The notes under the pieces: model-generated
The model's database searches: none
What the model was told of the DNA's origin: nothing
The model's input: the letters and a program-made list of their open reading frames with translations, nothing else
Origin: Eutreptiella sp. 'Long Island Sound 2002'
Taxonomy: Eukaryota > Protista > Euglenida
Reading direction: 5' to 3'
Assembly: GCA_964036045.1 (NCBI GenBank)
Contig: OZ038378.1
Location: 174,344,001 to 174,408,000 of the forward strand
Length of the DNA: 64,000 bases
Position numbers and translations under genes: made by a program
Shown: piece after piece, positions 6,323-40,700 of the stretch
How positions within the stretch are numbered: position 1 is the first letter of the stretch
How the letters are laid out: every line of letters begins with the position of its first letter

Positions 6323-6714
6323 TTGCTGTTTGTAGGTGGTTCAATTGCATTTGGTGTGTGAACCAACCAATTTTCCACCCTCTACAGGTCATAAATGGAA
6401 AATTATGCAAAAGACTTTTTTGATATTGAGACCACTTACAAGGATGATGTGTGCTACGTAAAGCATGTTTATGTTCATGTTTATGTTTCTGTAGCTTTCC
6501 AACCTTGGCAGCTCAAAAATGGAAATTTCTGAAACTAGCTTTTTTGATACTTTGACCATCGAAAATGATCAAATATCCTATGTAAAGCATGTTCTAGCCC
6601 TCCTTTTTATGTATTTTTCACCTACTCTCTTCAGGTCTTGGGGGGGGGGGGCGCCCAAGGGGTCTAGGGCACATCCTGCTTATGCAATGTTCCCGCCTCG
6701 GCAGCTCAGAACTA

Positions 6715-9700
6715 GAAATCACGTCGCAGAGGTTGTTGGATCAAAGCCATGCAGGCGCATATAGGACATACCCATTTAGGCCTTTTTGAGGCTATTCGCA
6801 TACCCTACCTCAAGGGGTGTAATCGTTAGCCTAACCCTTTATGAAATTATCATTCTGTCCAATAAACGCATCCCCCCGTGAGTTTCTGGTCCAAACCCTC
6901 CCACATCACGCCTACTTGAAACCCACTTCAGAAATCAATCCGAAATCAGAATCAGAAAAATAAGTTTCGAAAACTTCGATTTGTGAGTTGCACATAGTGA
7001 AAAACTACATAAGCAGGTTGCGTACCAATTCCTTGGGACCCCCCCCCCCCCCCGGACCTGTCACCCAAATATTGTGAAAAACATGTAAATATGGCCCAAA
7101 ACATGCTTTACATACCTTGGATGGTCATTTTAGGCGATCACAATATCATAAAAAGAAGCTTCGAAAACTTCGATTGTTGAGCTGCCCAGGGTGAAAAAAA
7201 CTGCATAAGCAGGTTATGTACCCATCGCTTGCGAGACCCCCCCCCCCGACCGGACTTAATACCCAAATAGGGTGAAAAGCGCGTAAATACAGCCTAAAAC
7301 ATGCCTTACATAGCTTGGATCGTCATATCGTGTGGTCACCGTATCATAAAAATAAGTTTCGGAAACTTCGATTTTGGAGTTGCCCGGTGTGAAAAGCTGC
7401 ATAAGCAGGTTGTGTACCGGCCCATTCACTAGGCCATTGTTGTCGGAAAAAGTCATTTCACGTTTTTGGCACGGCTTGTGACCGGCTCTCAGCAAGGCTA
7501 AAGACTGCAAAAAAATGTCCTTCCGTATCCTAGTAGGCATGTACTGTCACAACATCCCCACTCACACCCCTCAGAGTGGGTACAATGCGGTCACTGGTGT
7601 CGCCAAAACCAGAAACGTAGCAAAAATGGCTGAAAAGTGCATTAACTGCATCAGCGCTCGTCCCACTCCGCCCCATATAAACCCCATGGAGTCGGGACCC
7701 GGAAACACTTTTTCGGCTCAAAATCGAAAAAAAACCAAAAGATTCCTGATTTTGAACCCAAAAAGGGGGGGGGGTTCGTTTTTTGACCCCCCCCCCCCAC
7801 CACTCCCCCACCGCCCTCAAGACTTGAAAAAAGTGGGTTTCAAGTAGGGGTGGTGTGGGGGGGTTTGGACCAAAAGCTCATGGGGGGATGCTTTTATGGG
7901 ACAAAATACTTATTTCACAGGAGGTTTGACGAGCAATTCAACCCCTTCAGGTAGGGTACGCAAATAGTGAAGCAGAATCGGTAACGATCCCCGCGTTTGC
8001 ATTTTTGTAGCAGAGCTTAGCGTCGCGAAGGCTTCTCGCGCATAGCGCGAAGTCACGCAAATGACGCAATTTTACGTCAAGAGATTGACTGAAGGCAGCC
8101 AAAAGCTGCCGTTACGTGTTTTTATTTGGCATTTATTTTTTATATAGTTAAATTCTGTAGCTTAATATATGCGATTTGCGTGGTGTATGTTAATTCTGTT
8201 TGTTACGGAATCTGTTTGTCGTTGACGTTCAGGTTTGTGTCATATGGGAGGACCGTCAAAGGTTCTCAGAATTATTTGTAGGCCGGCACTGGCCTGAACG
8301 CCGCATCCCTCGTCCTGGGGCAGCATGCCAGGGCATCGTGGACGCAGAGTACGCCCTCGTTGAGGGCCAAAGGTGTGGAATACGCCGGTGGCGCTTAGCA
8401 TCGTGGCAAGAGCGCCCTCGTTGAGGGCCTACGGCTACTGGCCTATGGCGCTCAGCATCGTGGAAGCTGAAAACTGGAAGGTCTCAGCCTATGATGGATT
8501 CACTGAAAGAAACCCTCGATACAGGTTAGACCTCCTGTGGATTTGGTGCGCTGCGTTTGCTATTGGGTGCCAGCAAGGCTTGGACGATCCAAGGGTTTGT
8601 ATCTTTGCATGAGCAGCAGGATATTTTATTATCAAAATCAATCTGTGGTTCAAAAAAGCTCGCAAGGAGTTCAGCTTTTCTCACGTGAAAGCAAGGCAGG
8701 ACCAAGCGTGCGGCGGCAAAGTATGCAGGAATACCAAGGGATCAGCATCTTGTTTTTCTCACGTCAAAGCAAAACAAGGGATCAGCATCTTGTTTTTCTC
8801 AAGTCAAAGCAAAGCAAGTGTGGCCAAGACAAGCTGGATAGCAAAATGGTAGACAAATCAGTGGATCAAGAAAGGGAAAATCAGTGCAAGGCAGAGATTT
8901 TCAAGATCAAAGAAACAAGTTCAGCGCAGTGTCCCGTGGGTCTCAAGGGTCGAAGGCCTCACGCTCCGCGAGGCCCCACGGTACCGCTTCAAAATAATTC
9001 TGAAGGAGCGTCTAGCCGCCTTAGACGCGTCCGATCATGTGTTGCAAGCAGCCGCGTGTGGAGTGGACAACAAAACTGAAGATTCCCGAATCCTTCGAGG
9101 GGTACACGTTCCGTGCCAGCGTGTACAAAGTATGGGTGCTCCCGACCATGGTCCACAGTTACAGCGGGTGGTGAAGAAAGGTGCACAAGACCAGCATCGG
9201 TGCTGCACGGAAGCCATGATGCGTCGGAGGAGACAACGTCGAAGCAGGCCTTCGTTCAACCTTCGAGGTCTCAGCGAGAGTCGCCAAGTAACGTTGGAGA
9301 AGCCCGTCTTCGCGGCCGGCAACCTGGCTAAGCTCTTAGGAGGGGCATGAAGCGGAATCGGTAACGATCCCCGCGTTTGCATTTTTGTAGCAGAGCTTAG
9401 CGTCGCGAAGGCTTCTGGCGCATAGCGCGAAGTCACGCAAATGACGCAATTTTACGTCAAGAGATTGACTGAAGGCAGCCAAAAGCTGCCGTTACGTGTT
9501 TTTATTTGGCATTTATTTTTTATATAGTTAAATTCTGTAGCTTAATATATGCGATTTGCGTCGTGTATGTTAATTCTGTTTGTTACGGAATCTGTTTGTC
9601 GTTGACGTTCAGGTTTGTGTCATATGGGAGGACCGTCAAAGGTTCTCAGAATTATTTGTAGGCCGGCACTGGCCTGAACGCCGCATCCCTCGTCCTGGGG

Positions 9701-21935: not shown

Positions 21936-23958
21936 TCATAATGACTGATTGATGGTCCTGCCAATTGAGCCCTTTTCCCAAACCTCCCCCCCCACCGTTT
22001 TAGGGGGCTCTATCTCCAATCGAATATCGCTGATTTCAGCCTACACATCTGCCCGCCATCGAGAAGGCCAAACAAACCCCAAACCCATCCTTACAATATG
22101 GAAATATAAGCACCATAACCAACACATCTACTACTGCCTCATGCCAGGTGTTCTTGTTCAGGACATGCAGCGAAAGCATGCCGCCAATTCAACGAACAGT
22201 CCTCTTCAGGTCCCAGTCACTGTAAACAGCATGACATTATGCATACCTACACCCAGACCCAGGTGGGTTGGGCAACCATACTGCTTCCGACGCTTCATTT
22301 TATGTTTCACTTGTCGGGCGATGGGGGAGCAATCGCATATGGATTGGCACTGCACTGTGACAAATCTTCAGGGGTTACAGGAGCAAGACTGATGGTGATT
22401 GCAAGACAAGTTTGAAAAGGGACTTGACAGCGGACAGACTTTAGGTCACCGGGCGAGAGAGTCTTTTGACAGAATCCTGCCGCTCACTGCCTTGTGCAGA
22501 CACATGCAAAGTGAGAGAAAAAAATGTAGCATGGGGTAGTTGCGCTTAAACAAGGTTGCGCCTGTGCACGAGCTGTGATACAACAATGAAGGGATACACC
22601 AAAAACCCACCCATACCTTGCGCAGGCAAAAACTAGCATATTCTTGATGCCTTGGGAGAATGTTTGCCCGGGGCGCACCCTGTGCGCTACTTTTGTATTA
22701 ACTATCCCGACTTTAACCCCACATTTACCCTCACATGGAGAAGCCCCAAGTAGACCAGAGTGGAGTGCAACCCTTCCCTACAAAGCACGCTGCAAGAGGC
22801 GAAATGGCTGAATTCAACCTCAACGCATGTCACTTCCCATGTGCCTAACAAGCAGTATTATCTCCACAAGTGTGGGTGTCAATACATTCAGCACAATAAT
22901 GCTCCTTGCACTTACCACAAACTGTAATGGTGGAGCGCTTTTGACAATACAAAGCACACAAGTCTGCCTTTGCCTCATCCTCTCTCTCATATTGTGCAGC
23001 GGCTGAGTTGCTCTTATCAGCTCAAACATGAGGGAGGTGGGCGGGGGGGGGGGGGTCAAAAAATGACCCCCCCCTTTTTTGGGTCGAAAATCAGGAATCT
23101 TTTGGGTTTTTTTTTTATTTTTAGCCGAAAAAGTGTTTCCGGGTCCCGACTCCATGGGGTTTGTATGGGGTGGAGTGGGACGAGCGCTTATTGGGTTTAT
23201 GCATTTTTTAGCCATTTATGCTATGTTGGCAGTTTTGGCAACCTCGGTGACCCCGTGGTACCCACTCTAAGGGGTGTGAGTGGGGATGTTGTGACAATAT
23301 ATGCCTTTTAGGATACGAAAGGACGTTTTTTTGCAGTCTCTAGCCCTGCCGGGGGCCGGTCAAAACCCGTGCCAAAGACGCGAAATGATTTTGTCCACCA
23401 ATAATGGCCCAGTGAATGGGCCGGTGCATAACCTGCTTATGTAGTTTTTCACCCTGGGCAGCTCAAAAATCGAAGTTTTCGAAACTTCTTTTTATGATAT
23501 TGTGATCACCTAAAATGACCATCCAAAGTATGTAAAGCATGTGTTAGGCCGTAGTTACATGTTATTCACCCTATTTGGGTATTGGGCGGCGGGGGGGGGG
23601 GGGTCTCCCAAGGGATTGGTACACAACCTGCTTATGCAGTTTTTCACCCTGGTCAGCTCAAAAATCGAAGTTTTCGAAACTTTTTTTTTGATATTGTGAT
23701 CACCTAAAATGACCATCCAAGCTATGTAAAGCATGTTTTAGGCCGTATTCATGTGTTTTTCACCCTATTTGTGTATTGGGCGCATGGGGGGGGGGGGGTC
23801 TCCCAAGGGATTGGTACAGAACCTGCTAATTCAATTTTTCACCCTAGGCAGCTCAAAAATCAAAGTTTTCGAAACTTATTTTTCTGATACCATGATCACT
23901 TAAAATGACCATCCAAGCTATGTAAAGCATATTTTAGGCCGTATGTACGTGTTTTTCA

Positions 23959-24011
23959 GGCCTCTTGTTGTGTACTTGCACGTGGTGAGGCTGCCTAGTT
24001 GAGCCACAACA
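23959..24011 (+). ncRNA. Putative (possibly degenerate) HDV-like ribozyme at the 5' end of LINE A
   Basis: P1 GGCCTC/GAGGCT (23959-64/23987-92, with G1-U wobble), P2 TGTTGTG/CACAACA (23966-72/24005-11), P3 TAC/GTG around L3 TTGCAC, in HDV nested order. P4 and the catalytic C of J4/2 are not clearly assignable. Confidence 0.5.
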
Positions 24012-27000
24012 TCCTTGCATTTTCTTTTGACACATCCGCGTCTTCCCTCGCCTTCGCCCTCGCGCCCTGCGCACGATGGTTGACCAAGCAGGAGTAGCCA
24101 CCCAGCTCACTGCCCTCCTATAGCGCCCCGCGGTCCTTACGGCCATAGGCGCGGCGCTGGCTCCTTTTCTCGCGGGTGCACCACCCGCGACCATCGATGA
24201 AGGGGCGGCGCGCAGCCGCTCCCGTTCCAGGGGGCACAAGGGGGGCGGTGGATATGCCCAGCCCCCCCCCCCCACCCACTGCGGAGCAGGCGATGATCGC
24301 CTCGCTCCAGCGCCAGATTGCGTCCCTCGAGGGCGTGATCAACACCCTCCGCCGCGAGCTAGCGGAGTCGCGGGGCGAGCCAGCCCCCACGCGGCCCGGG
24401 GCAGCCGCAGCGGCCCCGGCCGCATCGACGACCGCAGCGGCAAAGGCCAAGGCCACGACGACCCCCGCGACAGCAGCAGCCAGCAAGGCGGCGGCCTCCA
24501 CATCCAAGGCGGCCACCACCTGGCAGCTAGCGGGGCAAAGCCACAGCCGGCGTTCCAAGAACGCCCAAGTCAAGCAAGCGGCAGCGCCGCCCCGGGGCTC
24601 CCCCCCCCCCCGCACCCCAGTCCCCGTGTGTGTGGACTGGTACCGGCTCGGGCCGGCGGAGCCTGGAACATCATAACGGGTGCCTCTGCCGGTCGGGGCA
24701 TCTTCCCGTCCACCCCTTCGCCTCCTCCCAGCCCTCCTGGGCGCAGGAGGACATCAAGACAGCCCGGGGCAACATCACCCTGTGGGGAGTGGGAGGCGTC
24801 ACGGAGGGTCCCACTCCCCCGCCCCCCCCAACAGGCCGGCCCCGGTCGCGCGACCTATGCCTTGGCGACGCGGTCCGCTACGCAGGGGTCCCGGCCGGGC
24901 GCGGTGCGGGTGGTGGCGGCCGCCGGCCGCACCAAGGCGGCGCTCCTGCCGATACAGCCCACGGCAGCGGCCCTCTGGGCCCTGCTCCCCTCGACGACGG
25001 CGGTGCAGCCGCTCCGCCTCTACCAAGGCGAGTCCTGGGACACGATCCAGGAATGGGGCATTGCCCAAATCACGCCGGGAAGACACCCGGCAGAGCGGAA
25101 ACAGCCCTCCCAAGAGGGGGCCCTACGATGCGTGGCCTTGGTGGGTTGCACGGTCCACGAGGCCCCCCTCGCGGCTGCGGCCGCCCTCACAGCGCACGAC
25201 AACGTCCAGCGAGTCACGGCGCTGGTGCACGTCCAGGGGGGCAGCAAGGCGGCCCCCACGGTGCTGCAGACTCTCCGCCGATCGAAGACCAGCCTGGCGG
25301 TACCAGGCACGGCCCTGCAGGGCGTGGTGCGGACCGAGCGCCAGCCCTGGGAGACGGCCGACCCGGAAGTGGTGGACCCCGCACCGCCGCGGGCAAGATC
25401 CGGGCCACGCACCGGGCGGAGGACAAAGACCGCCTCCACGAGTGGCGCTCCTGGCTGGAGGAGGCCTGGTCCTATGACCAGGGGGCGGTATACCGGTGGC
25501 TGAAGGATGAGTCCTACGCCCCGCCGGTCATCTTCCTCTCCACGCCGGATGGCACTGCCACGGCCAACCTGGCGGAGATGGATGGCCTCTTGCAGGACGC
25601 CTGGCGCCCAATAAATCGCAAATATGCGAAGGACCCCGAGCCGAACCCAGCGGCCTTCCTCCGCCGATATGGGCACCATGTACGGCGGGTCCCCATGATT
25701 GCCTCACGGCTAGACGGCCCCCGCCTACGCAAGGGGCTCTACCGCATGAAGCCCTCGGCGTTGGGGCTGGTTGGGTGGAGCCTAGCCGACCTCCGCTCCC
25801 TCCCTGACAGGCTGCGGGGCTGGCTAGCGGACCTCCTGCGAGAGGTAGAGCGCCTTGGCAAGTGGCCGGCCCGCCTGGCCGAGGGCTACACGGCCCTCAT
25901 CCCCAAGGAGGGCCCGCCGGGGCCCCTGAACACCCGCCCGCTCACGGTCCTGTCCATGGTCTACCGGCTGTGGGCAGGAGTGCGCCTGGTGGACGCCATG
26001 GCGTGGCAGGAGTCCTAGGTCCACCCGGCGGCCTTTGGTTTTCGCCCCGCTAGGAGCGCCCTGGACGGGGCGGCGGTGACGCAGTTCCTGCTGGAGTTGT
26101 GTCGCCTCTGAGGATGGGCCGTCGTGGGGACGAGCATCGACTACGTCAAGTGTTTCGATCTCATCCCCCAGGCGGTCGTGTTGGCCTTGGCGTTGGAGTT
26201 GGGCATGGACCCGGGCACGAGCCGTGCCCTCGGGGCCATGTACAAGCAGCTCCGCCGGGCCTTCAAGATTGCCGGGGCCCTTGGCCTGTGGTGGCAGGCC
26301 ACCAACAGCATCCTCCAGGGGTGCCCCCTGTTGGTGATCCTGGTGAATGTGCTCACCACGATGTGGAAATGGGAGGTGGACTCCCTACGCCGGCAGGTGT
26401 GCGCGCGGACGGCCGCCCTCCACCCCGTTCTGGGCGAGGACGCGGCGGACGACCTGGAGCCGGGAGCCCCGCCCCCCCTCAAGGATGCCGGCCCCGGCTA
26501 CGCGGCGCTTGGGCTGTCGGGCTATGCGGATGGCCCTGGGCGCGGCCTCCCTCCAAGGGAGGGTCCCCGCGACGGAGGAGTGGCTACAGGTCACGGGACA
26601 CAACGTCCGCGTGGACAAGCCCTGATCCTGGGTCCAGGGGGAACGGGGCGCCCCGGTGGTCCTGCTCCGGGGAGTCCCGGTCCCGCTGGCGGCAACTTTC
26701 CGCCAGCTCGGCGTCGACATTGCCATTGGGGCCTTCAAGATCACGAGGCCGGTTCTGTCCCGGCGCCTCGAAGCAGGGCAGAGTGCCCTTAGCCGCCTCC
26801 CCCACCTCTCAACCTATGACCGGCGGGAGCGGGCCATCAGCACGCTAGTCACCCCGCTGGCGCTGCATGGGGTGGCGGTAGCGTCGGTGACGGAGCCCGA
26901 CCTGCGGGGGCTGGAAACTGTGGTCGTGCGGGCCCTGTGGGGAGCCACGCGCCTGTCCCGGGCCAAGGAGGTCATCTTTACCGTCCTTTCCAAGGGGCAC

Positions 27001-29550
27001 CGCGTCTCCCTGGTCATGCACACTCGGTACGAGCGGCTCCTCTGGCTGGCCCGCGTGGCCCGGCGGCCGAGGGTCACCCAGGTCTTCGCCCAGGCTATCT
27101 GGGAATCGGGGGGCCGCCCTTCCGGAACGGGCCCGGTGGGGCGCGCGCTCCGCACAGCGGCCACCCTGACTGGAGCCCGCGCGAGGGTTTATTGGTGTTG
27201 GGACGTCCCGGGGCAAGAGCACCCCCTGCACTTCGTGCAAGAGCCCCTCCGCCAACTCCAACACCGGGGCCGAGACAGCCTTCGTTGCCACTCCTCGCGC
27301 CAGCTTGAGGCGCGGCGCCCGGTCACCTTGGGGGGACAGGGCGACGGGGCGGACGGCCCGGCCTGCCGCGCGGCGCTGCGGGCGGCCTCCACCGAGTTGG
27401 AGAAGTCGCTGCTGCGCGGCCTTATGGCCCGGGCCATGTGGGCGGCGGCCAGGGTGTCGGGCCACGGCACGCGGACCAATTCCGCGTGCCCCCACTGCGG
27501 CGCGGCGCACGAGGACGAAGTCCACAGCCTGTGGAACTGCCCGGAGTGGAACAATGCCAGGGGGACATGGCGCCCTTGGCTTAGCAACGCAGCACAGGCA
27601 ATCCCCCACCTGGGACCACCGGACCAGTGGGCATCCTGCCTACGGAAAGCAGGCCTCTTCCCCCTCCGACTGGCGCAGGGGGTGGACCGGGGACTCCGCG
27701 ACGAGTTCATGTACTGCCTTTACGGCATGTACCCGGCGGTCCTCGCTACCTGCATGGCAGCCAGCCAGGGAGACCAGCCGGGCCACGGGGACTCTCTCTT
27801 CCCGAACCGGCCGCGTCCGCGGCCCCGCAACCCCTATCCTTGGGACGACTTCGTCAGCCCCCTGCCGGGGGACACAATCCGCCACCAGCCGCGGCTCCGG
27901 CCGGGGACTCCGCCGGACTGGCGGTGGCCCCAGGACTTCATCCACGACTTGGTCCGGTGGCCCTGGGCGCTTGCTTGGGTGCCAGGGCTGGCGGAGGTGT
28001 CCTGGGCTAAGCTGGCCCTGGATTATGAGGCGTTTGTCAGGCGGGCGCTCCCCGCCTCCCCGGACCAACGGTTGCGGGCTACGTGCCCGCTGCTGCGGGA
28101 ACGAGCCCAAATTCTGCGCAAGGCAGTCGGCTTGGCGGAACGCCACCTAGCGGCGGGCGCGCTGGTGAGCGGGGCCCTGCTAGGGCGCTTCCGCTCGCTC
28201 CTCCCCCTAGGGGGCCGCGTGTGCGCGGGACTTTCGGCCCGCCTGTTCTTCGCGGCACGCCGCGAGGTGATAATGCAGCTCATGCGCCTAGCGACGCACT
28301 ACCGGGACTCGTGGGTCTGGCTCTTACGAGCGCCTGCCCGCATGCGGCCACCACTAGGCGACCGCTTCTTAATGGACTATTTCCAACGTCCCCTCGAGGG
28401 GGGGGAGGCTCTGCTCCCGTATGCCCGGAGGCCCCGGCGGGCGCCGCCCCAAAGCGTCCCGCTCACAGCCCCGCAGCGCAGCCGCCCGCTAGGGGCGGGC
28501 GGCGGCACACAGGGCGCGCTGTGCTTGGAGCATGGGGCGCCGTCTTGCGCCAGGTGCAAAAGCACGGGCTGGGGCATCAGCCGCTGCTGCCGGGCAGGCC
28601 ACGACGGCCACACCGGCCCCTCGGCGGGCCCACGTTGTCCAAGAGTTCCGCCCCGGGTCGCGCCAGGATGCCAGGTACTCGTCCCTGAGGACCGACGCAC
28701 AGGAGTGGCCGCCTTGTCCTCCTGGCTGGGGCGGGCCCGCCCGGCTTCCCAGGCCCTCCCGAGCCCAGGCCCCCCGGCGGCACGCCGGTGCACGGCGCCG
28801 CCCAGGACGCTGGGCACTCGCCACTCTTCGACATTGAGGCCACACGACCCCAGGCCCACAAAGCGCCACGCGCCTAAACTCCTCCTGGCTAACCGGGAGG
28901 GCTCAAGAAATGTGGAGCCACCGCGAACGGGCGAGGGGGTTGCTGATCCTTTCTCCCCCCCACTTGCAGGGAGGGACGACGGCCCCGGGCCGGTTGCCGC
29001 GGCCGCCTCCGCCTCCACCGGATCCACGGGGGCACTGCCCGCACCGCGGGACCCACCCCCACCACCCCCCCCAGCAGAGCCCCCCCCCCCCCCCCCCACC
29101 GCCGGCGGCAGAGCCACTGGCGTCGCTCCCTGACGTTTTCAGCCGCATCTCGGCGGCCTTGAGTAGCCGCGCGTTGCCGCGGCGACGATCCCCTCCGCGG
29201 GGTCGGTGGCGGCTTCAACCGAAGGCCACCGGGTCAGTGGCGGACATGCTCCGCGCATGCCCCCCCCCCTCCCCACACGCAGCGGCCAACGCCGCCGGGG
29301 GGAGCTCCTCTGACCCAATGGCGGACGCGCCCTCAGCGCCTCCCCCATCCCAGTCCACACTGCCGCCGCGGCGGCAGCACGGCAGGGCCAGCACGGAAGA
29401 GACCTAGTCCCCTCTGGCTCGTCCCTCCTGGCCGCCGTGCGGGCACTGGCGGGGGGCTTGTAGGGGAGGCCATGGGCGCCTGAACTCGATTTGGCCCACC
29501 TCCCCGCCCCTCTGCCTCTGTACATGGGCCAGCAGTCGTTAAAAGACGAT
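23959..29550 (+). mobile_element. LINE A: non-LTR retrotransposon with coiled-coil ORF1, decayed RT, CCHC knuckle and long C-terminal extension
   Basis: ORF1 IASLQRQIASLEGVINTLRREL. RT motifs PLNTRPLTVLSMVYRLW, IDYVKCFDLIPQ, LQGCP, GYAD, FRQLGVDI. Knuckle CPHCGAAHEDEVHSLWNC. Stops at 26016 and 26109 plus frameshifts. ~21-bp TSD gccgtat(g/t)tacgtgttttt(c/g)a at 23938-23958 and 29551-29571. Confidence 0.92.
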
Positions 29551-31755
29551 GCCGTATTTACGTGTTTTTGACCCTATTTGGGCACTGGGCGCCCGGGGGG
29601 GGGGGGGGGGCAAACGGGATTGGTACACAACTTGCTTATGCAGTTCTTCAGCCTATACAACTCGAAAATCGAAGTTTTCGAAGCTTTTTTTTTGACATTG
29701 TGATCACCTAAAATGACCATCCAAGATTCGTAAAGCATGTTTTAGCCCGTATTTATGTAGTTTTTGCCCTATTTTGTGTGTGCATTGTTTGGGGTAGATT
29801 CTCTGCGAGGTGTACTTGCCGAAGGCAATAGAATTTTTTTTCAAAAAAATTTGGCAAATGATGACTTTTCTGAACCTACTGGACACACTAATTGCAAAAG
29901 TCCATTTTCATTTTTTGCCAATTTTGGGTGTGGATCACCTCCAAGGCCTGGGGGTCAGTCTCGGTAGGATTTTAGGGGTCCCGTCAATTGAGCCATTTTT
30001 CAGGTAGGAGGGGGAGTCTAGCCAGGGGGCTCTATCGACACACCCTCCCAATTGAAAGCCCGTCCGCCCCTGTCCCACTTTCAATTGTTGGGCGACATGT
30101 GTCTATATTGGATTTTTTGACCTAGCTTAGCACAATGGGATTTGGGCACTTTTTTTCATTTCTCAAGAAAGCAAGCAAAGATTCCAGGAAAGGTTAGTAT
30201 TGGCGCATCACCCCCCCCCCACTCACCACTTCTTCCAATCATGCATGAATGACTTCTGCTTGAGAAATAACCGCGCACAGGGTGTTAGATTAAAGCCAGG
30301 TAGGCGCATACCGGGGAAAACGCCACATAGCCCCCCATTTTGGGCCTTTTTGGGCCTATTCGCGTACCCTACCCCAAGGGGTTGAATGGTTAGTTCAACC
30401 CCTTGTAAAATCATTATTTTGTCCAAGAAACGCACCCCCCAATGAGTTTTTGGTCCGGACCCTCCAGACCCCCCCCACTTGAAACCCATTTTTTGAGGTT
30501 TTGAGGGAGGTGGGTGGGGGTTCAAAAATGTCGAAAAAATGACCCCCCCTTTTTTTGGGTCGAAAATCAGGAATCTTTTGATTATTTTTTTTTGCTTTCC
30601 GATTTTTAGCCGAAAAAGTGTTTCCAGGTCCCGACTCCATGGGGTTTGTATGGGGTGGAGTGGGACGAGCGCTTATGCGGTTTATGCATTTTTTAGCCAT
30701 TTATGCTATGTTGGCAGTTTTGGCAACCTCGGTGACCCCATGGTACCCACTCTAAGGGGTGTGAGTGGGGATGTTGTGACAGCATATGCCTTTTAGGATA
30801 CGAAAGGACGTTTTTTGCAGTCTCTAGCCTTGCTGAGGGCCGGTCACAACCCGTGCCAAAGACGCAAAATGACTGTTTCCGCCGGTAATGGCTCATATGA
30901 GTGAATGGGCCACTGCACACCTTGGTTATGCAGTTTTTCACCCTGGTCAGCTCAAAAATCGAGCATTCCAAAACGTATTTTTTTCATATTGTGACCACAA
31001 AACATGACCATCCAAGGTATGTAAAGCATGGTTCAGACTGTATTCATGTGTTTTTCACCTTATTTGGGTATTGGGTGCATTGGGGGAGGTCTCCCAAGAG
31101 ATTGGTACACAACCTGCTTTTGCAATTTTTAACCCTGGGCAGCTCAAAAATCAAACTTTTCGAAAATTATTCTTCTGAACCCGTGACCACCTAAATGACC
31201 ATTCAAGGTATGTAAGGCATGTCTTAGGCCGTATTTACGTGTTTTTCACCTTTGGGCACGGGGCCATGAGGCAACGGATACTGGGCTCGCATACACCCCC
31301 GTGTCACAGGCGCATGGTCATCACCACATAGTTCAGTGTTTTTCCTTGCTGCACTGCAGCGCAGACCAGTTATGTACCACTCCAGGTGGCTGCTGATTGT
31401 GCTTTGGCCTCGGCCATATGTACATTGGGGTCAGCTCGCACCCACCACCCTCCTACAGTGCCGGTTAGTCTCTAACCCTTGCTCTGCGGGTCTGCCGCGA
31501 CCTCTTGCTTTCTGGCACGTAAAGACGTGTCATGTCCGAACTCTGGGGGCGCAAAGGCGTCCCGATGTTTCACCATCAAACTATTCAGCTCAATGCTTCA
31601 ATAGGTGCCTTGCTGTACTGCAGCGCTGACCTGTTCAATACCACTCCAGGCGGTTTGCGTTTGTGCGTTGGCTGCCTACATATCCAGGTCAGCTCGCACC
31701 CACCACCCTCCCACAGTGCCGGTTAGTCCCTAACTCTCGCTCTGCGGGTCCCCCC

Positions 31756-31869
<114 letters not shown>

Positions 31870-31940
31870 CCCTCCTCCCACTGTGACCCACACTCTCTCT
31901 CTTGCATAAAGGGGTTTTCGGGTTGTTCGGTGGGTCTCTA

Positions 31941-32010
31941 TCCCCCCCGGGGTTCGAACCCTCCTCCACGGGACAGAAGAGGTGTGTTATACCCACTGAG
32001 CTACGAAGAG
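31941..32010 (-). pseudogene. tRNA-derived sequence (pseudo-tRNA / SINE head)
   Basis: Minus strand CTCTTCG TAGCTCAGTGG GTATAACACACCTCTTCTGTCCCGTGGAGGA GGGTTCGAACCC CGGGGGG: A-box and B-box, G-U-rich acceptor stem. D and anticodon stems are broken, so identity (Asp GTC or Arg TCT register) is unresolved. Confidence 0.7.
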
Positions 32011-32793
32011 TTGTTGCCAGCACTGTTGTTCTGACCTTTCCTGCTCTCCCCCTGCATGTTGTCCCCTGTCAGGCATATTGCCGTTCGCACAGCAGTGTGC
32101 ACAGCGTCTCCGGATACCGGGTCCGCTTGCCTGAAGAGCGTTCTCTGGAACAGCCTTAAGAGGTTAGCTCGGCCCGTCAACCACACATGCATGCAGTCTC
32201 CATTTCTGCTCACACAGGAGGGCACCGCTCTGTGTCCCTCTGCCGTCGGACAGTGGAGGATCGCCTCCCACTAGAACGGGTGCCACTTGCCTGCACTTTT
32301 GGGTCGCCACTGGACCTGCATGTTCGTCAGAGCCTGAGTCTTCAGGGTCGAGTTGATTTGGACCATCACCGAGTAGAGTTCTTGGTTGCTCATGAGCAAT
32401 GGCTCTCCATGATTGTCCATAATTTCACAGTGCATCCTGGTGCTGTGTGGTTGGTCCAGTCGGAGCCAGATCTGCTGATTGCGGGCCCAGGCCATAGTGG
32501 TCAGCTCGGCATTGACTGCCCTCAACCCTTCGTTCGCAATGGCGTCCAGCTGGCTTAGTGCTTGCACCTTGAAACGCTGGCGTTCTTGCTTGGGCTTGAC
32601 CTTCTTCGGGGCTGGCTGAATTTGTGTGTAGGGGCCATGTCGATGTTGATGTGGTCCCTGCTTCTTCCATGGCCTTCCCGGCAGCATCACGCCAAGGAGC
32701 TCTTCCGCGACAGGACGCGGGGTTTGTGCCTGAGTTCAGCCGTTGCCGTTGCCACACCTTTGTGGTACGTCGCAACAGGACGCGGGTCTCGTG

Positions 32794-33762
32794 TCAAAAT
32801 GCTCCTATGTCAAAACGCAGGTTTCGGGCATGCAGGCATTTGTGGGCTTGAAACCCGTGGAAATTCCGCATCGGAATGCAGGGGTCACGGGCTCTGCTGC
32901 TAACAACCTTGTCCAGGGTTCCTGCTTTTCCTGAGCTTTCGCCTCTTTCGCTGTCGCCTGGTGTCACTCCCCTCAACCCTACCGTGGACTCCGACCCGGA
33001 TGATGATTGTTGTGTGACTTGTTGGGACCACAGCGGGCTCGAGCACATGCCTTCCGTCGCCAATCCATTCGCCACCTCATTCCCCTGCACGTTGACATGT
33101 GCTGGGACGTGCTCCCACCTGACTTCTCTTCCCGGCTTTGCCATTTCCTGGAGCAGCATTTCCCACACGGGCACGTGGACCTGCAGCTTGCCGGATGTGG
33201 TTATCCATCCCTTTGACCTCCAGTGCTGTGCCCTGCCGGTCGCTCCTAGTTGCAGGTACTGTGAGTCGGTGAGGATTGCCAATTTTGGCACCCAGAACCC
33301 CTGTAGGGCTTCCCGCGCTGCCCAAAGCTCCGCACCGTTGTTTGTTTGCTTGTGGCGTGTCGGTACATAGCCGCAGAAACGCACTTCAGGCCCTTGCTCA
33401 TCTTCCGCTGCGACTACGCCAAAGCCACTTGCCCTGCGCATGTCCTTGTGGCTCAGTCTTTTTGATGACCCGTCTGTGTATACAATCCTGTCCCCTTTCG
33501 CTACCAGCTCCGCAATCAGGTCTTGTACTCCTTGAAGCACTCCCGGGCCTGCCTGCCTCGGGCGCTTTGGGCGTGATTCTGCTTCCCTGTGCCAATTGTG
33601 TGTGCCGGCGTTGCGTTCTTGCGTGAAGCACTCCGTGTGCGTTTGCCACCACGCACTCAATCCCCCATTTACATGCACTTCCCCTTGTCGTGGCTGTACT
33701 CCCGTATCACAAAGCTGCACCAGCGATTGCTTGAAGCCTCTCCATTGTTCCCTGCGTTCTTT
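32794..33762 (-). CDS. Ribonuclease HI domain (retroelement-borne, N-terminally truncated by the insertion boundary)
   Basis: D-E-D catalytic residues are present (YTDG, AEL, TDS), with the conserved His (HVPAH); the fourth Asp is replaced by Asn (EVANGLA). The listed ORF start at 33840 lies in the host repeat and is not part of the element. Confidence 0.85.
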   Translation of the reverse strand, partial: KERREQWRGFKQSLVQLCDTGVQPRQGEVHVNGGLSAWWQTHTECFTQERNAGTHNWHREAESRPKRPRQAGPGVLQGVQDLIAELVAKGDRIVYTDGSSKRLSHKDMRRASGFGVVAAEDEQGPEVRFCGYVPTRHKQTNNGAELWAAREALQGFWVPKLAILTDSQYLQLGATGRAQHWRSKGWITTSGKLQVHVPVWEMLLQEMAKPGREVRWEHVPAHVNVQGNEVANGLATEGMCSSPLWSQQVTQQSSSGSESTVGLRGVTPGDSERGESSGKAGTLDKVVSSRARDPCIPMRNFHGFQAHKCLHARNLRFDIGAF

Positions 33763-34221
33763 CTTTGGGCACGGGGGGGGGGGGGCTGCGGGGGGGTCTC
33801 CCAAGGGATTGCTACACAACCTGCTTATGTAGTTTTTCAACCTAGGCAGCTCAAAAATCGAAGTTTTCGAAACTTATTCCTCTGTCCCCTTGATCACCTA
33901 AAATGACCATCCAAGGTATGTAAGGCATGTTTCAGGCCGAATTTACGTGGTTTTCACCCTTGGACACGGGGGGGGGGGGGGGGCTCCGGGGGGGTCTCCC
34001 AAGGGATTGGTACACAACCCGCTCATGTGGTTTTTCACCCTAGATAGCTCAAAAATGGAACTTTTCGAAACTTGCTTTTTTTGATGTTGTGATCACCTAA
34101 TATGACCATCCAAGGTATGTAAAGCATGTTTTAGGCCATATTAACGTGTTTTTCACCCTATTTGGGTACTGGGCGCCGGGGGGGGGGGGGGGGGGCAAAC
34201 GGGATTGGTACACAACTTGCT

Positions 34222-37200
34222 CCTCACCACGATCTGGAAGTGGGAGGTGGATGCCCTGCGGGAGCAGGTCTGCGTGGCCACAGTGGCGCTGCCGCCGGCG
34301 CTAGTGGCGGCAGAGGCCGACAGTGAGTCGGACCAAGCCAGCCAACACAGCGACTCCGCGGAGGAGTCGGAGCTGCATCTGCAGCTGCATGCGCAAGGCC
34401 CAGGGCTGGCGGCCTTGGGAGCGTCAGGCTATGCCGACGACACACAGGCAGTGGCGCCAGGGACGGCAGCCCTCCAGCGGACCGCCCCCACGACGGAGGC
34501 GTGGCTCACCTTGACGGGGCAGGATGTCCGCGTGGACAAGTCCTGCTCCTGGTCGCAGGGGGAGGGGGGGACGCAGGCAGTGCTTTTGCGCGGCCTCCCC
34601 ATACCGGCAGCAGACTGTTTCCGCCAGCTGGGGGTGGACTTCGCCGTGGGCGGCGCCCGCAGCACGGGGCCGGTGCTCCCACGACGCTTGGAAGCCGGCC
34701 GCAGCGTGCTGCGGCGCCTCCCGCATCTACCCACTTTTCAGCGGCGGGTGCAGGCGGTCAGCACCCTCGTGACGCCGCTGTCGGTACATGGGCTGGCCGT
34801 CGCCCCAGTGACGGACCAGGACCTGAAGGGCCTAGAGACCATGGTCCTGCGGGCGGTATGGGGGGCGACCAGGCTCTCCCGCGCCAAGGAAGTGGTCTTC
34901 GTGGTCCTGACGCAGGGCCACCGCATCTCCCCGGTGATGCACACCCGCTACGAGCGGGTGCTATGGATGACCCGGATTGCGCGCACCCCGGGACCCGTGC
35001 AAGTCCTGGTGCAGGTCATCTGGGAGAGCGGCCTCCGACCCCCGACGACAGGGCCCTTCGGGCGCGCCCTGCACGTGGTCTGCCTGCTGGGCTGGCAACC
35101 ACTGGAGGGCTGGTGGTCATGGGTAGTGCCGGGCCAGACAGAGCCGCTGCACCTGGTGCAAGAGCCCATGCGGCAAATCCCGCACAGGGTGCGGGACAGT
35201 CTGCGCTGTCATGCCATGCGCGGGCTGGAGGCCCGCCGCCCGGCGACCTATGGCGGGCTGGGGGACGGGGTAGATGGGGAGGCCTGTCGCGCGGCACTCC
35301 GGGTAGCATCCACAGAGCTGGAGGCCGCCCTCCTGCGGGGCTTGTTGGCGGGGGCGCTGTGGACGGCGGCCCGCGTGCGCGGGCACAACATGCGGGCCAC
35401 GTCCAGCTGCCCCGGCTGCGGCTCACAGCACGAGGATGAGGCGCATGTACTCTGGGACTGCCCGTCGTGGGAGACGGCCAGAGCAGGGTGGCACGCATGG
35501 GTCTTGCAGGCGGCGGAGCACCTGCAGCTGGGCCCACCGACGGGCTGGCCGGCATGCCTGCGGCGCGCGGGCCTGCTACCCTTGGCACTGTTCGCGGGGG
35601 CGGACCGCCGGTAGGTGGACGAGTTCCTGTAAAGGCTGTACGGGATGTACCTCGCGGTGCTCGCGGCCAGATACGCCCACACCCGCTCGGGAGAGCAGGG
35701 GCAGGGCGAGGCCCTCTTCCCGCGGCGCCCGGCGCCGGGCGGCAAGGGGGGATACCCATGGCAGGACCTGAGCAGTCCCCTGCCGCAGCTGCCGGCGCCA
35801 CCGGCAATGCGACTCCGCCCAGGCGTCCCGCCGGGGTGGCCGTGGGAGCCGGCGTTCGCTCAGGACCTGGTCCGCTGGGCAGCGGCCCTCTGATGGCAGG
35901 ACGGCCCAGGGGACGTCACCTGGGCAGAGCTGGCCCTGGACTGCGAGGCGTTCCTGGGCCGGGCCCTGCCGGCGTCCCCCCACCATCAGTTGCGGGGGAT
36001 GCGCCACCCGCTCGGCGCGCGCGCAAGTCCTGCGGCAGGCCGCGCGGCTGTTACAGCGCCACGTGGCGGCAGGGCGCTTCCTGCAGGGGGCTCCCAGTGA
36101 CCGCTGCAGGGCAAACGTTCCGCTCGGGGGCCGCCTGTGTGCGGGGCTGCGGGCGCGGCCGTTCTTCGCGGCTAGGGCGGACATGGCACTGCAGCTGCAA
36201 GGTCTGGCCCTGCATCTGCAGGAAGCGTGGCTGCACCGCCTGCGCACGCCAGCCCGCATCCGGCCGGGGGGGGCGACACGCTTCCTCATGACCTATTTCC
36301 CCCGCCCCCCGGGAGGGGGGCCAGCACTGCTCCCCTACGCTCGCCGGCCGCGGCGGGAGCACGTCCCAGGGGTCGCCCGGGTGGAAGAGCAGCGCCCGCG
36401 GCGGTAGGGCGAGGGCAGAGGGTCGGTGGGGGCCCGGTGCGCGCAACATGGCTCGCCCTCGTGCCGCCGCTGCCTGCAGCTGGGCTGGGGTATCAGCCGG
36501 TGCTGTAGCGCGGGGCACGAGGGACACACGGCGCCGGGACAGGCGCCCCCCCAGCAACGGCGGGCACCAGGCCGGCAGGTGCTGGCACCGGCGGCCCGCC
36601 AGGCGGGGGCAAGCGCGCTCTCAGCATGGCTGGGGCGGGCTAGACCGGCATCCGCAGCGCTGCCGGCGCCAGAGAGGCCCTCGCAGCGCGCCCGGAGGCT
36701 GGAACCGCGGCGGCTGGCCCGGCAGGCGCCCTCGCCCGACCGCGACGTGGTGCCCGCGTCCCGACGTGCGCGCAGATCGAGCCCGCCGCGCCCGGCAGCG
36801 ACAGATGACCCCCCCCCCCCCTTCCCCACAAGGGACAGCCGCACTGGGGCTGCAGGATGTTTTCTGCAGCATTTCGGCCGCCCTGCTGGCACAGGGGGGC
36901 AGGCGGCCCCGCCCCTATTGCGGTCCCGAACCCCCCCCCCTCCCCACAGGGCAGACAGGGCAGGCAGGTCAGGCAGGGCCGGGTGCAGGGGCACAGGGAA
37001 CAGCGAACAGTGCACAGCACCAGGGTGCACCACCAGCACAGTGTGCAGCGCACAGCGCACAGCACCACGACAGTGCACATGCACTGCCAGCACAGAGCAC
37101 GGCACACAATACGCCACAGGATGCAGCACACAGTGCACCACAGGGTGCAGCACACAGTGCACCACAGGGTGCAGCACACACTGCACCACAGGATGCAGCA

Positions 37201-37791
37201 CACAGTGCACCACAGGATGCAGCACACAGCGCAGCACACAGTGCGGCACACAGCACAGCACACAGTGCAGCACACAACACAGCGGATGCAGCACACAGTG
37301 CACCACAGGATGCAACACACAACACAGCACACAGTGCAAGCGCAGCACACAGTACAGCACACGGCGCAGCACACAGTGCAGCGCACAGCGCAGCACACAG
37401 TGCAGCACACAGCACAGCACACAGTGCAGCACACAGTGCAGCACGCGCGGCACGCCGGGCGCAGGGCCCAGGACGACCGGGGCCCCTGCGCCAGGCCACA
37501 CTGTTTTCCATGGGGCTGCCAGTGCGGCAGCCCCTTTCGACGCATCGCCCCCCTGGGGCGCCCGACGCCGTAGCGCCGGCGTCCCCTGGGGGAGTATCCA
37601 TGCCTAACCTGGCGCACGGGAGGGCGAGCTCGGAAGAGACATAGTCTTGACCGACTCGTCCCTCTGTTCCGCCGTGCACCAGAGGCGGGGGGCAATTAGC
37701 CCGGGGGGAAGGCGCAGAACTCCGAGATCGGCCCTTTCCCCCTAGCCCCTCGACCTCTGTACATAGGCTCATGGACAGTAAAAGCGCATTA
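34222..37791 (+). mobile_element. LINE B: 5'-truncated, diverged relative of LINE A
   Basis: Begins inside RT (LTTIWKWEVD, GYADDTQAV, FRQLGVD). Knuckle CPGCGSQHEDEAHVLWDC; same C-terminal motifs as LINE A; shared 3' end cctctgtacat(g/a)ggc..taaaag. Flanking duplication 34136-34221 / 37792-37873. Confidence 0.92.
36975..37445 (+). repeat. Degenerate gcagcacacagt/gcaccacagg (12/24-nt) repeat expansion inside LINE B
   Basis: Visible tandem units, absent from the homologous part of LINE A. They generate several long low-complexity ORFs. Confidence 0.9.
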
Positions 37792-40700
37792 CCATATTAC
37801 CGTGTTTTTCACCCTATTTGGGTACTGGGTGCCGGGGGGGGGGGGGGCAAACGGGATTGGTACACAACTTGCTTATGCAGTTTTTCACCCTAGGCAGCTT
37901 AAAAATCGAAGTTTTCGAAACTTTTTTTTTGATATTGTGATCACCTAAAATGACCATGCAAGATACGTAAAGCATGTTTTAGCCAGTATTTACGTAGTGT
38001 TTACCCTATTTTGTGTGTGCATTGCTTGGGGTAGATTCTCTGCGAGGTGGACTTGCCGAAGGCCATAGAATTGTGAAAAGAGCACTCCACGCTCGGTATG
38101 ACAGAGGTGAAGCATTGGGATAGATCGCCGGAACATTGTTTAGATGCCGGGCGTGCTGGGCAAACATTCTCTCACTGTAATAGCCCAAGTCTCGGATCAA
38201 GGAAGCAACACCTACGTGTCATATCCGCAACCACAGTGAGCTCTAGGACAATCTTAGCACTGCACTGCTTTGATTCTTAGCTTTCTCAAGTATTGTCTAC
38301 TAAGAGAGTTTTCCTAGCTCACCTAGGTCCCAGGCAAAAGAAAACTGTCCAATCAAGGGAGCAACACAAAGAAGGGATCGAGCTTTTTTGACTAGTGGCC
38401 GGTTTGCTACCCACATAATAGACGTGGCTGTCAATGAGTAATCGTTCTTTGATGCTATAGTTGACGTAGTGAAGAAAATAAAAGGCAAAACAATGTGTTG
38501 GCACATTACATACTCTATGGCTTGGTTTTGCGAGAACAAAGTGGTTATGCACATGTATGCTACCAAATCATAGGGAACACCGTCCACACAGTGCAAAGTT
38601 TTGCGTGTTGGAAAACCACACCAACCCTATCTTTAATTGATTTGTACAAGTTATTGTGGATTTCAAGGTGTATAATGCATACTTTTGGTAAATTGTATTA
38701 TGTTGTTGAAATTTGTCTGAAGCGGAGTATAGAAACATTGTCACGTCACAGTTGAGGGCCTTTGGAGGTGCAGTTTTCGCGTGGTGCAAATACAAGGGAA
38801 CCTCTAAGATCAATGCACTCCAAAGTCAAAACCAAGTCTGCAAAGAGTCACGCCATCAGTGAAATAGAGAAAATGCTTTTCGACAAGCTGATGCATGTAT
38901 ATAAACATTGAAGATCAAATTAGTCATCATCTACAGGGACCAAGATGAAACACGGAGACCGGTGAAATATGGTAAAAGGTTTCCTCACTGCGCAAGGCCT
39001 CACAAAACGAGGCACAACCGAAAAATATTGAAAACACAATAACACAAAAAGCGACCGGGGTTAATGGCTACATCACATGAATCTTTCGTTTAATATTATT
39101 GCATTTTTGCTTGCATCTCCTACTAGGATCCCTGCGCGGCTTAAATTGGATCTCTTACAGTGGCAGTATAGCGCATTACAACTACAATCAAGAGATGTCT
39201 AGTTGTCACGTCTCCACTTTGCGCCGCCAACCCAATAATATGGAAGCAATGTTTTCATGTAGGAACACAGACGTGAAAACGGAAATGGCTGCTGGTGCGA
39301 CAAGCGGTTATGCTAGAGGTTGAAGTCCACGCGGCACAAGATAGCGGCGCATGCAGACAGAAATCACCGAAATAGTAAAAGCATTATAGTTGTGAAAATG
39401 CATTTGTGAAGAGAAAGTGCAAGTTTTTTTATTTTTGCTCTTTGTCGTAGATTTCGCGGTAGAATGACACAACGATGCCGTTGCAGAAAATCAAAGCCCT
39501 AGGGGAGCTGCATGGAACAATGCATGCAGAGACATGGAATTTGTACATAATGATGCGCCAAAGAACTACATTGCAAGCACCAAAATCTGAAAAGCATCAA
39601 TGGAAACGGTCTCGGGTGCAACGAAAACGGAAAGTGAGGCTCAGACATGGTGGAGCAGCCGCCACACCCATTGCACAATAGGCAGCTCAAATAACCGGTG
39701 AGCCTAGCAACCATTGCAACGAAACGACCCTATAAGGGACACTTACCAAGGGTAGACAACTTGTTTTACCTAAAGAACATCACTCACACAGCGAGAAGCC
39801 CCAAAATGCAACCACTATGGCTATCATTCAACTGAAACGAAGAGCCATGTAATGGCATCGAAAACCGGCTATTGCCAACCTTGCGGAACATGGGTGGGTA
39901 TCTTCGCCATGTACCGTTGGTACATGGCGTATGGTGTGCTTACCAAATTTGTATTACAAACGCGTTTCGAGTGTTGTAGCCGCCAGTCATGTTCCTACGT
40001 AAAGGGCTTTTGCGACCGAGAACAACCATCTTGTCCTACTCCAAACTGCTTGCAATGGAAAAGAACATGATCGCTATCTTGTTATCCGCTCTCAAAGTGT
40101 TGCAATCCTTCCGGAGAATGGCAGAGGCCGCGCATGTAATCAAGCACCGTGTCAATGCCCGTGCAAACAGGGCAACCATAGCCACAACAATGCTACATAT
40201 GCTATTTGAGTGGTGCCCGGGCCAATCTTGGAAAGTCGGAGATAGAATCTGAGACCCCGTTCATTGATGAAGGTGCCCATAGGAAGGAAAAAGGGGAATG
40301 GAACTTGGATCCCAAACGGTGCATAGCGGTGGCTATCAGCCAGCCAAATTTTACGCAAAATGCTACAAACAGGCCAAAAATCGCGATTTCAGATGCCCAC
40401 TATCAAGCCCCACTAGTGAGGACCTGGCTCTTCGCAGATTGCCATGGGTTGGATGAAAAATGGTGAGTTCAAATTAAATTACTTTGACACCCGGAGACCC
40501 TGGCGCCATTTTCAAGTCATCATTCAGTAACAAAAAGGAAATGTATAAACTCATGTAGAGCCGAATAGATGATGCTTTGTGACATGCTTATTGGCCCCCA
40601 AAAGTGGCTTTTCGGGCATGTTTTGCACTACGGTGGAGGAAATTTTGACGGCCATAGCCAGTGCCCTTAGCGAAATGCACATGCAACTCTTTGGGCATCT

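Follow-up and report, generated by a model that had tools for sequence, protein, structure and literature searches.

The window analysed here is a 64,000-nucleotide stretch of the genome of the euglenid Eutreptiella sp. 'Long Island Sound 2002' (assembly GCA_964036045.1, contig OZ038378.1; C1:174344001-174408000 of the 2.28 Gb searched). Region 23029-38072 of this window consists of two copies of a non-coding repeat element, here called the host, each of which is split by a long interspersed nuclear element (LINE) with a GC content of 70%. LINE A lies in host 1 (23029-29836) and LINE B in host 2 (30264-38072), i.e. in separate host copies. Each is joined at its 3' end to TTTTAGG^CC of a ~195-bp unit that is repeated in tandem in the centre of the host. 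An earlier note on this DNA had placed both 3' ends at the same position of the unit, and both junctions were confirmed within 1 nt (29551 and 37791). Very probably, LINE A and LINE B are dead members of a single large, L1-like LINE family of the apurinic/apyrimidinic endonuclease (APE) type, each from a different, diverged lineage, and this family inserts specifically at one site within the central tandem repeat of an abundant mobile element that is non-coding.

Host units were delimited with Tandem Repeats Finder (TRF; period 195) and host copies were linked by self-BLAST. At 70% GC all frames of the LINEs are open, and reading frames were therefore settled by three-frame translation and comparison with intact relatives. 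The 174-nt 3' end of LINE A, used as a query, gave 954 genome candidates, 30 loci of which were read. The N-terminal reverse transcriptase (RT) piece of LINE A gave at least 2,693 candidates, some of them within open frames of ~2,000 amino acids (aa), and eight 10-kb loci from this search were the source of the copies of a young lineage (Y). A total of 48 genome loci were sampled (labelled L004, L042 and so on). Across them, 35 distinct LINE 3' junctions were collected by similarity to the query sequences, in addition to genome-wide pattern counts.

LINE A is complete at both ends, deleted in its interior and interrupted by stops and frameshifts. Its 5' untranslated region (UTR) is followed by aa 9-462 of open reading frame (ORF) 1 and then by ORF2 from aa ~601 onwards, with RT, CCHC motif and C-terminal extension. 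According to tblastn with the intact copy L042, an internal deletion has removed ORF1 aa 463-838 and ORF2 aa 1-600 and, with them, the whole APE domain, which accounts for the lack of an APE in LINE A. The element starts immediately behind ...GTGTTTTTCA and ends with ...GACGATG, followed by CCGTATTTACGTG. Upstream of it the host reads ...TTTTAGG CCGTATGTACGTGTTTTTCA, and after it the host resumes with CCGTATTTACGTGTTTTTGA CCCTATTT; when aligned, the two sides give a target-site duplication (TSD) of 20 bp, in which 18 of 20 bases are the same. LINE B (3,570 bp) is 5'-truncated, with its first base inside the RT (motif B/C region), and also carries stops and frameshifts. It ends with ...GCGCATTA, followed by CCATATTACCGTG, and its TSD measures 82-86 bp, with 2 substitutions and a 4-nt difference in the length of a G run. 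LINE B represents a lineage other than that of LINE A; it shares the end GCGCATTA with the young Y lineage and, judged by its 3' end and C-terminal region, is on a Y-like branch.

Both LINEs occupy the last full unit of their host, 285 bp (LINE A) and 281 bp (LINE B) from the host 3' terminus, and both units are of the 'gcaaacggg' variant. This placement, reported in the earlier note, is correct for LINE A and LINE B and does not extend to the family. Other LINE copies lie 90, ~285, ~490, ~680, ~690 and ~1130 bp from the host terminus, in both of two host subtypes. A general preference for the last unit is thus not supported, and all units of the array, in either subtype, serve as the target. 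The claim that the two LINEs differ more than their host flanks do was borne out. Identity between LINE A and LINE B in the ORF2 region is 66.6% by blastn over 2.1 kb (73.4% across aligned bases), that between their 3' UTRs is 82.7%, and the host 3' flanks are 91.5% identical.

The same junction recurs across the genome. Thirty-four of the 35 sampled 3' junctions fall at the host site; in two of these the site is deleted or another LINE stands in tandem. Most genomic 3' flanks are shared rather than unrelated. In the 30 loci obtained with the LINE A query, nearly all 3' ends are followed by (TG|TA)CC(G/C)T...GTGTTTTTCACCCTATTTGGG. Insertion is in one orientation, with the joint at TTTTAG(G/C)^CC. 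A pattern comprising the last 17 nt of the LINE, a gap of 16-24 nt and the host 9-mer CACCCTATT had 455 matches in the genome, while controls had 0; a 35-nt LINE-end pattern had 420 exact matches. On C1 and C2, the exact host 9-mer was found behind 39 of the 55 exact 35-mer LINE ends (71%; lists compared by hand). Since the exact 9-mer recovers 20 of the 25 true sites (80%) in the sampled junctions, the real share of LINE ends at the host site is probably near 85-90%. The empty site, CATGTTTTAGSCC-N8-GTGTTTTTCACCC, has 8,619 exact matches in 2.28 Gb, in arrays at ~195-bp spacing. Chance is excluded as the source of the shared junction, because these empty sites account for a minute part of all genome positions, whereas 34 of the 35 sampled 3' ends are found there. 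The host subtypes, AGG|CCGTATTTAC and AGC|CCCTCTTTAT, are each used by both LINE branches. Among the 100 matches listed and counted by hand, 31 of 35 of the Y branch and 39 of 65 of the A branch were in AGC|CCCTCTTTAT; these counts, which are not normalised, hint at sub-specialisation of the branches by host subtype.

Both nick positions could be mapped from the junctions, the first at TTTTAG(G/C)^CC and the second 20 bp downstream, behind ...GTGTTTTTCA. The typical duplication is 20 bp because full-length copies start with GG 20 bp downstream of the 3' junction site. Some 5'-truncated copies, including LINE B, join further downstream, which leads to duplications of 80-130 bp. TSDs were readable in 10 insertions and measured 19-20 bp in eight of them (LINE A, L004, L021, two copies in L026, L042, L043 and L045); the long ones belong to LINE B and L012 (~130 bp). 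These positions fit insertion by target-primed reverse transcription in which the bottom strand is nicked at the first position and the top strand 20 nt from it. By analogy with Tx1L and R1, the choice of target may rest with the APE domain, perhaps with assistance from a conserved C-terminal domain whose predicted structure weakly resembles winged helices. The LINE may lack a promoter of its own and be transcribed from the host element, and its RNA may then be freed from host transcripts by a hepatitis delta virus (HDV)-like ribozyme at nucleotide 1. The host repeat would in this way offer a harmless, ever-renewed landing site.

Targeting could also be real and yet be set mainly by base pairing of read-through LINE transcripts, through host sequence at their 3' end, to the nicked target, with a nuclease of loose specificity. 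Read-through pairing is known to aid the precise insertion of R1 and R2, and read-through RNA would be a natural product of copies inside the host. The LINE also has no poly(A) or simple-repeat tail, and its 3' end abuts the target directly, as this explanation would have it. However, pairing at the 3' end does not explain why the top-strand nick is fixed too, as seen in the 19-20-bp TSDs, and both lineages use both host subtypes, although these differ in the first 10 nt past the nick. We therefore regard pairing as the main determinant as rather unlikely.

Independent insertion is documented by the TSDs and by the abrupt loss of identity at the junctions. Six copies (L004, L021, one of those in L026, L042, L043 and L045) repeat their own site variants on either side of the LINE; the 20-bp variants duplicated in L042, L043 and L045 are CCCTCTTCATG..., CCCTTGTTATG... 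and CCCTCTTTTACG..., respectively. Even the truncated copies (L004, L021 and two in L026) have TSDs of 19-20 bp, three of the four with repeated variants of their own. Full-length Y copies start with GG directly behind ...TTTTTCA (one copy with an additional A) and end with ...GCGCAATA before CC. Their final 300 nt are 98.3-100% identical, whereas the next 110 bp of host are 68-86% and the 5' flanks 72-78% identical; identity breaks exactly at the junction. An alternative origin, in which a single LINE insertion was copied as a composite by segmental duplication or host transposition and the junction was inherited rather than targeted, might be suggested by the mobility of the host, its frequent tandem arrangement and the shared unit variant and similar flanks of LINE A and LINE B. 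It is refuted by the loss of identity at the junction and by the site variants that recur in the TSDs. Moreover, 5' truncation points and TSD lengths vary among copies, and insertions occupy various unit positions in both host subtypes. The window and the Y lineage show opposite patterns, the LINEs being more diverged than the flanks in the former and the flanks more diverged than the LINEs in the latter. Taken together, these patterns exclude descent of all copies from one composite, an origin that we consider extremely improbable; the view of the earlier note that LINE A and LINE B are independent insertions and not a segmental duplication is thus upheld. Equally improbable is the idea that the supposed host behind the junction is the LINE's own 3' end or 3'-transduced DNA, with the 195-bp units derived from LINE tails, for although nearly all LINE 3' ends have the same ~40 bp behind them, it is refuted by the 8,619 uninterrupted sites without a LINE and by the TSDs, in that the same 20 bp precede full-length 5' ends and removal of the LINE and one TSD copy leaves an intact unit, and BLAST found no homology between the host and the LINE body.

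The site-specific family comprises several lineages, ~30% apart in ORF2, that use the same site. Among them the Y lineage is young, with intact ORFs, and from its sequences is apparently still active. In one locus (L024; G000:C11:3120981-3124151) two LINEs stand in tandem: the second, which is 5'-truncated, comes immediately after the 20-bp TSD of the first, an arrangement that renewed targeting of the duplicated site would produce. The features of the window are given in Table 1.

Table 1. Positions of the LINEs, the host elements and associated features in the window
Feature	Position	Strand	Basis or remarks
LINE A	23959..29551	+	tblastn of intact ORF1/ORF2 (L042), three-frame translation, zf-RVT match
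LINE B	34222..37791	+	TRF, self-BLAST, three-frame translation, tblastn
Candidate HDV-like self-cleaving ribozyme fold	23959..24011 (L042:318-375)	+	Covariation between A and Y lineages
Host element 1, 5' part: 5'-truncated head and 2.7 units of ~195 bp	23029..23958	+	TRF, self-BLAST, TSD alignment
Upstream TSD copy of LINE A	23939-23958		Last 20 bp of the 5' part of host element 1
Host element 1, 3' part	29552..29836	+	TSD copy 29552-29571, rest of last full unit, partial unit, 12-bp subterminal inverted repeat, hairpin, terminus ...GCAATAGAATTT
Host element 2, full-length 5' end gaaat/aaccgcgcacagg..., ~660-bp head and first units	30264..31264	+	Six 5' ends aligned, self-BLAST
Unrelated ~2.5-kb insertion in a unit of host element 2	31265..33756	.	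CTTTGGGCACGGG(G) on each side; outside the LINE system
Host element 2, middle units	33757..34221	+	34136-34221 is the upstream copy of the long TSD of LINE B
Host element 2, 3' part: TSD copy 37792-37873, last unit, 3' terminus	37792..38072	+	
Further host copy without LINE, with uninterrupted (empty) target sites	5034..6324	+	Self-BLAST
Further host copy, reverse orientation, head cut by a long terminal repeat (LTR) element at 7968-10372	6951..7967	-	

Copies of the Y lineage measure 9.14-9.16 kb, with an ORF1 of 838 aa and an ORF2 of ~2,080 aa, and are mutually 98.6-99.7% identical over up to 9.15 kb. In the intact ORF2 of L042, Pfam detected Exo_endo_phos (APE) at aa 194-401 (E 1.7e-5, passing the cut-off), RVT_1 from aa 787 (E 3.4e-8) and zf-RVT at aa 1311-1351, with the CCHC motif CPGCGSQHEDEAHALWDC at aa 1333. 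A CCHC motif after the RT is common to the L1 group at large and is not diagnostic for the Tx1 clade. With an N-terminal APE and an RT in ORF2, the family belongs to the functional class of target-specific APE-type LINEs. An R2-like class, with a restriction-like endonuclease (RLE), was ruled out by the N-terminal APE and by the C-terminal extension, which has no RLE match in PDB or Pfam. The APE is kept in L044, a closer relative of LINE A, which aligned across this domain at 65% identity. When the RT was compared with solved structures, the best match was human L1 ORF2p (E 3e-10), and R2 was weaker (E 2e-4). No clade name emerged for the LINE: its protein relatives are unnamed ENA entries, and the Atlas clusters are generic (APE/RT/zf-RVT). 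ORF1 is very divergent, with no Pfam match at E <=0.1 and no CCHC pattern in its 838 aa; ORF1 proteins of the L1/Tx1 type have RRM and/or CCHC knuckles.

Beyond the CCHC/zf-RVT knuckle, ORF2 continues for ~730 residues, for which neither a PDB sequence match nor a Foldseek match was found. This extension includes a conserved domain that is retained in related families down to 27-41% identity. Folded by itself, the domain gave a pLDDT of 82.5 and a pTM of 0.79, and the best structural neighbours of the prediction in the VIA search were almost all winged-helix domains, with weak scores (Z <=4.6). Also in the C-terminal part is a coding tandem repeat of 12/24 nt (LINE B, 37102-37444; L042 ORF2 aa ~1870-2015), which encodes long runs of an (AAHS/TAHS/QHTV)-like kind; it occurs in the B and Y lineages and is not present in LINE A. 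Right before the APE lies a 2A-like motif, GDV(H/E)PHPGP, which reads CGDVHPHPGP in L042 (3600-3630; ORF2 aa ~174-183) and CGDVEPHPGP in L044 (ORF aa ~453-462), with H in place of the canonical N of NPGP. L1Tc of trypanosomes and some animal LINEs are known to have 2A-like peptides.

The candidate ribozyme begins at nucleotide 1 of the LINE and spans ~53 nt, with proposed helices P1 (1-6/29-34), P3 (16-18/26-28), P1.1 (20-21/35-36) and P2 (8-14/47-53). Between the 5' ends of LINE A and the Y lineage, P1, P3 and P1.1 are kept in the same register though the remainder has diverged, and double-sided changes that preserve pairing are found in three of the six pairs of P1 and one of the three pairs of P3. 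In all, 77% of cells pair, compared with 29-63% after sliding of the partners; P2 keeps its register in only one of the two distinct sequences.

The host itself is non-coding and consists of a ~660-bp head, an array of ~195-bp units, a partial unit and a tail ...CTCTGCGAGGTGGACTTGCCGAAGGCAATAGAAT(TT). A search of 22000-39000 with Rfam at E up to 1 gave no small nuclear RNA, tRNA, 5S or spliced-leader (SL) RNA match in the host unit. The 3' end of the tail is sharp in 19 sampled copies. Full-length 5' ends read GAAAT|CACCTCGCAGAGG, and this boundary is uncertain by ~5 nt because the GAAAT that precedes it is strongly conserved. An inverted repeat of 12 bp, CACCTCGCAGAG, stands at the 5' end, and its complement is subterminal, 22 bp from the 3' end. 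Between this complement and the end there is a hairpin, TTGCC-GAA-GGCAA, which stops 7 nt before the terminus and for which L029 has a compensating variant, TTGCT/AGCAA. A host copy nested in the unit of another splits that unit at ...GGAAAT^TTCCGAAAC without duplication, giving junctions GAAAT^TT; 30264-38072, the one full-length copy with both outer flanks (split by the 2.5-kb insertion and LINE B), shows no TSD. Exact copies of host 22-mers number 4,211 for the 3' end and 4,522 for the 5' end genome-wide, and thus there is no bias towards 5' truncation. At least 10 precise tail-to-head pairs were found on C1 (27-nt offset between the 22-mers). Same-strand arrays with a spacing of 1.3-3 kb and junctions ...AATAGAAT|CACCTCGCAGAGG, which resemble macro-satellites, were seen on C1, for example at 1766-1778 kb, 66.68-66.69 Mb and 80.14-80.18 Mb.

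Nested host copies occur in host units and also in a LINE. In L006 (G000:C24:6666419-6669591), a host element in reverse orientation (…AAATTCTATTGCCTTCGGCAAG) interrupts a LINE copy at a point ~520 bp upstream of its 3' end; the host thus retained its mobility beyond the arrival of that LINE, and nesting goes both ways. Two further LINE copies (L015 and L022) contain the same AT-rich element, with the end ...CATATTGACTTTAATTTGG, ~1.5 and 1.1 kb upstream of their 3' ends. It occupies different LINE positions, is followed each time by GCCACTAGGG, and may be another insertion-prone element. The unrelated insertion in host element 2 has a 150-bp internal direct repeat (31344-31492 / 31608-31750) and a (CT)51 tract at 31766-31867.

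Several identities were considered for the host. A cut-and-paste transposon of the piggyBac or mariner type does not fit, since there are no true terminal inverted repeats, the 3' repeat is subterminal and 30264-38072 has no TSD. Three host copies in the window are 5'-truncated, as in a retroposon or short interspersed element; this identity was ruled out by the equal end counts, the inverted repeat, the hairpin and the tail-to-head junctions. The host tail AATAGAAT is not a TSD, as it is conserved whatever the flank. Helitron_like_N (Rep) had at least 863 candidates in the genome, many in ORFs of 1,400-2,600 aa, with local clusters at C11:29.05-29.24 Mb and C2:71.50-71.56 Mb, and rolling-circle transposons appear abundant and intact. 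On balance, we lean towards the host being a non-autonomous rolling-circle element of the Helentron type (HINE). The target is indeed carried by a mobile element, as the earlier note had proposed, and this host looks like a rolling-circle element rather than a cut-and-paste DNA transposon.

Thomas et al. described HINE/DINE-1 elements as non-autonomous Helentrons with subterminal inverted repeats of 12-15 bp, a short 3' palindrome, insertion at TT and optional central tandem repeats that make up to about half of the element (PMC4067079); an oyster element of this kind with central tandem repeats has also been reported (PMC7492417). The host resembles these in its 12-bp inverted repeat (terminal 5', subterminal 3'), the short hairpin a few bases from its 3' end, central tandem repeats over about half of its length, T^T junctions without TSD, head-to-tail arrays and the abundance of Rep (Helitron_like_N) genes in the same genome. 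It differs in that its 3' inverted repeat is 22 bp from the end, compared with 38-60 bp in mite families, and no autonomous partner with its termini was identified, the ends of the elements that carry Helitron_like_N not having been read.

Several observations weigh against the proposed system or parts of it. About 29% of the exact LINE ends on C1 and C2 are not followed by the exact host 9-mer, and the survey of flanks comprises the 35 query-similar junctions and the pattern counts. Among those junctions there is a sole exception, in L047, where the LINE ends with ...GTAATCGACGAATG and has an unrelated repeat, TCCCCAAATTGCCGTTATTTAGGCC..., behind it, possibly as a second target or through off-target insertion. 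The L047 element (G000:C18:11905303-11915302) is a related LINE, 73% identical to LINE A, on the minus strand, with an ORF of 1,656 aa and a 3' end at ~3415, and the repeat behind it also occurs behind a host 3' end in L021. The ribozyme proposal is based on two sequences, and Rfam (22000-39000, E up to 1) reported no HDV family at the LINE 5' end. The predicted winged-helix character of the C-terminal domain, given the weak match, is a lead only. The site specificity of the family is very probable despite these points. A more elaborate picture can be offered tentatively and is, as a whole, somewhat doubtful: a long-lived, still-active euglenid LINE clade of several lineages, with an origin independent of animal Tx1, specialised on the satellite-like central repeat of a Helentron-type transposon. 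The clade would read its site with the APE and a novel C-terminal winged-helix-like domain, and a minimal HDV-like ribozyme of 53 nt would free its RNA from transcripts of the host element. If true, this would be the first pairing of a LINE with a Helitron-type element, and a protist would have yielded a compact, naturally programmable system for site-specific integration.

No paper on LINEs of this sort that target transposon repeats in Euglena was found in the literature searched, in keeping with the suggestion of the earlier note that the system is probably undescribed. New here are the evidence from two lineages, the identity break at the junction, the Helentron-like anatomy of the host and the deletion that accounts for LINE A. 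The layering of part of this 2.3-Gb genome is explained, in that rolling-circle-like elements carry satellite-like arrays and these arrays collect LINEs; for annotation, host-LINE composites should not be taken as single elements. LINEs that insert precisely and in one orientation attract current interest as models for programmable gene insertion, as is the case for R2. The present family brings together a 40-bp target on which both nicks are mapped, naturally occurring intact copies, and a C-terminal domain that is conserved and unexplored.

Among known site-specific elements, SLACS, CZAR and CRE1 are non-LTR elements of trypanosomatids that have a restriction-like endonuclease and reside in spliced-leader RNA genes. 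They share with the present family the phylum Euglenozoa and a multicopy target, but this family is of the APE type and resides in a transposon repeat. The rDNA-specific R2 and R1 resemble it in nucleotide-precise, orientation-specific insertion into a multicopy target and in the lack of a poly(A) tail. Co-transcription with the target is also likely here, and the candidate HDV-like ribozyme at nucleotide 1 recalls the processing of R2 by an HDV-like ribozyme. On the other hand, R2 has a C-terminal restriction-like endonuclease with N-terminal zinc-finger and Myb motifs, in contrast to the N-terminal APE found here, and the target is a transposon repeat instead of rDNA.

The closest parallel in way of working is Tx1L, which lands in the internal tandem repeat of Tx1D. 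In both systems an APE-type LINE occupies one site of another, non-autonomous transposon, with a fixed junction, one orientation and many composites, and the site lies inside an internal tandem repeat of that element (in the present host, a 195-bp array between a head and a sharp-ended tail). The differences are considerable: the Tx1 clade has been described from animals and the present family is from a euglenid protist; its RT is only distantly L1-like; its ORF2, of ~2,080 aa, is extended by ~730 aa at the C-terminus and has a 2A-like motif ahead of the APE; its TSD is 20 bp; and its host looks like a rolling-circle element (Helentron/HINE-type), not a piggyBac or mariner derivative. Tx1L and Tx1D of Xenopus laevis are treated in PMC4494074, which cites Christensen et al. 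2000 and which also describes crocodilian Tx1-Mar families that insert into Mariner-N4_AMi; in this sense, as a way of working, the analogy drawn in the earlier note is apt. Targeting the repeat of another transposon, a habit recorded until now for Tx1 elements of animals, has thus evolved in a distant protist as well, where it involves at least 2,693 candidate matches to the RT, several lineages of old age that keep one site and an apparently active master lineage.

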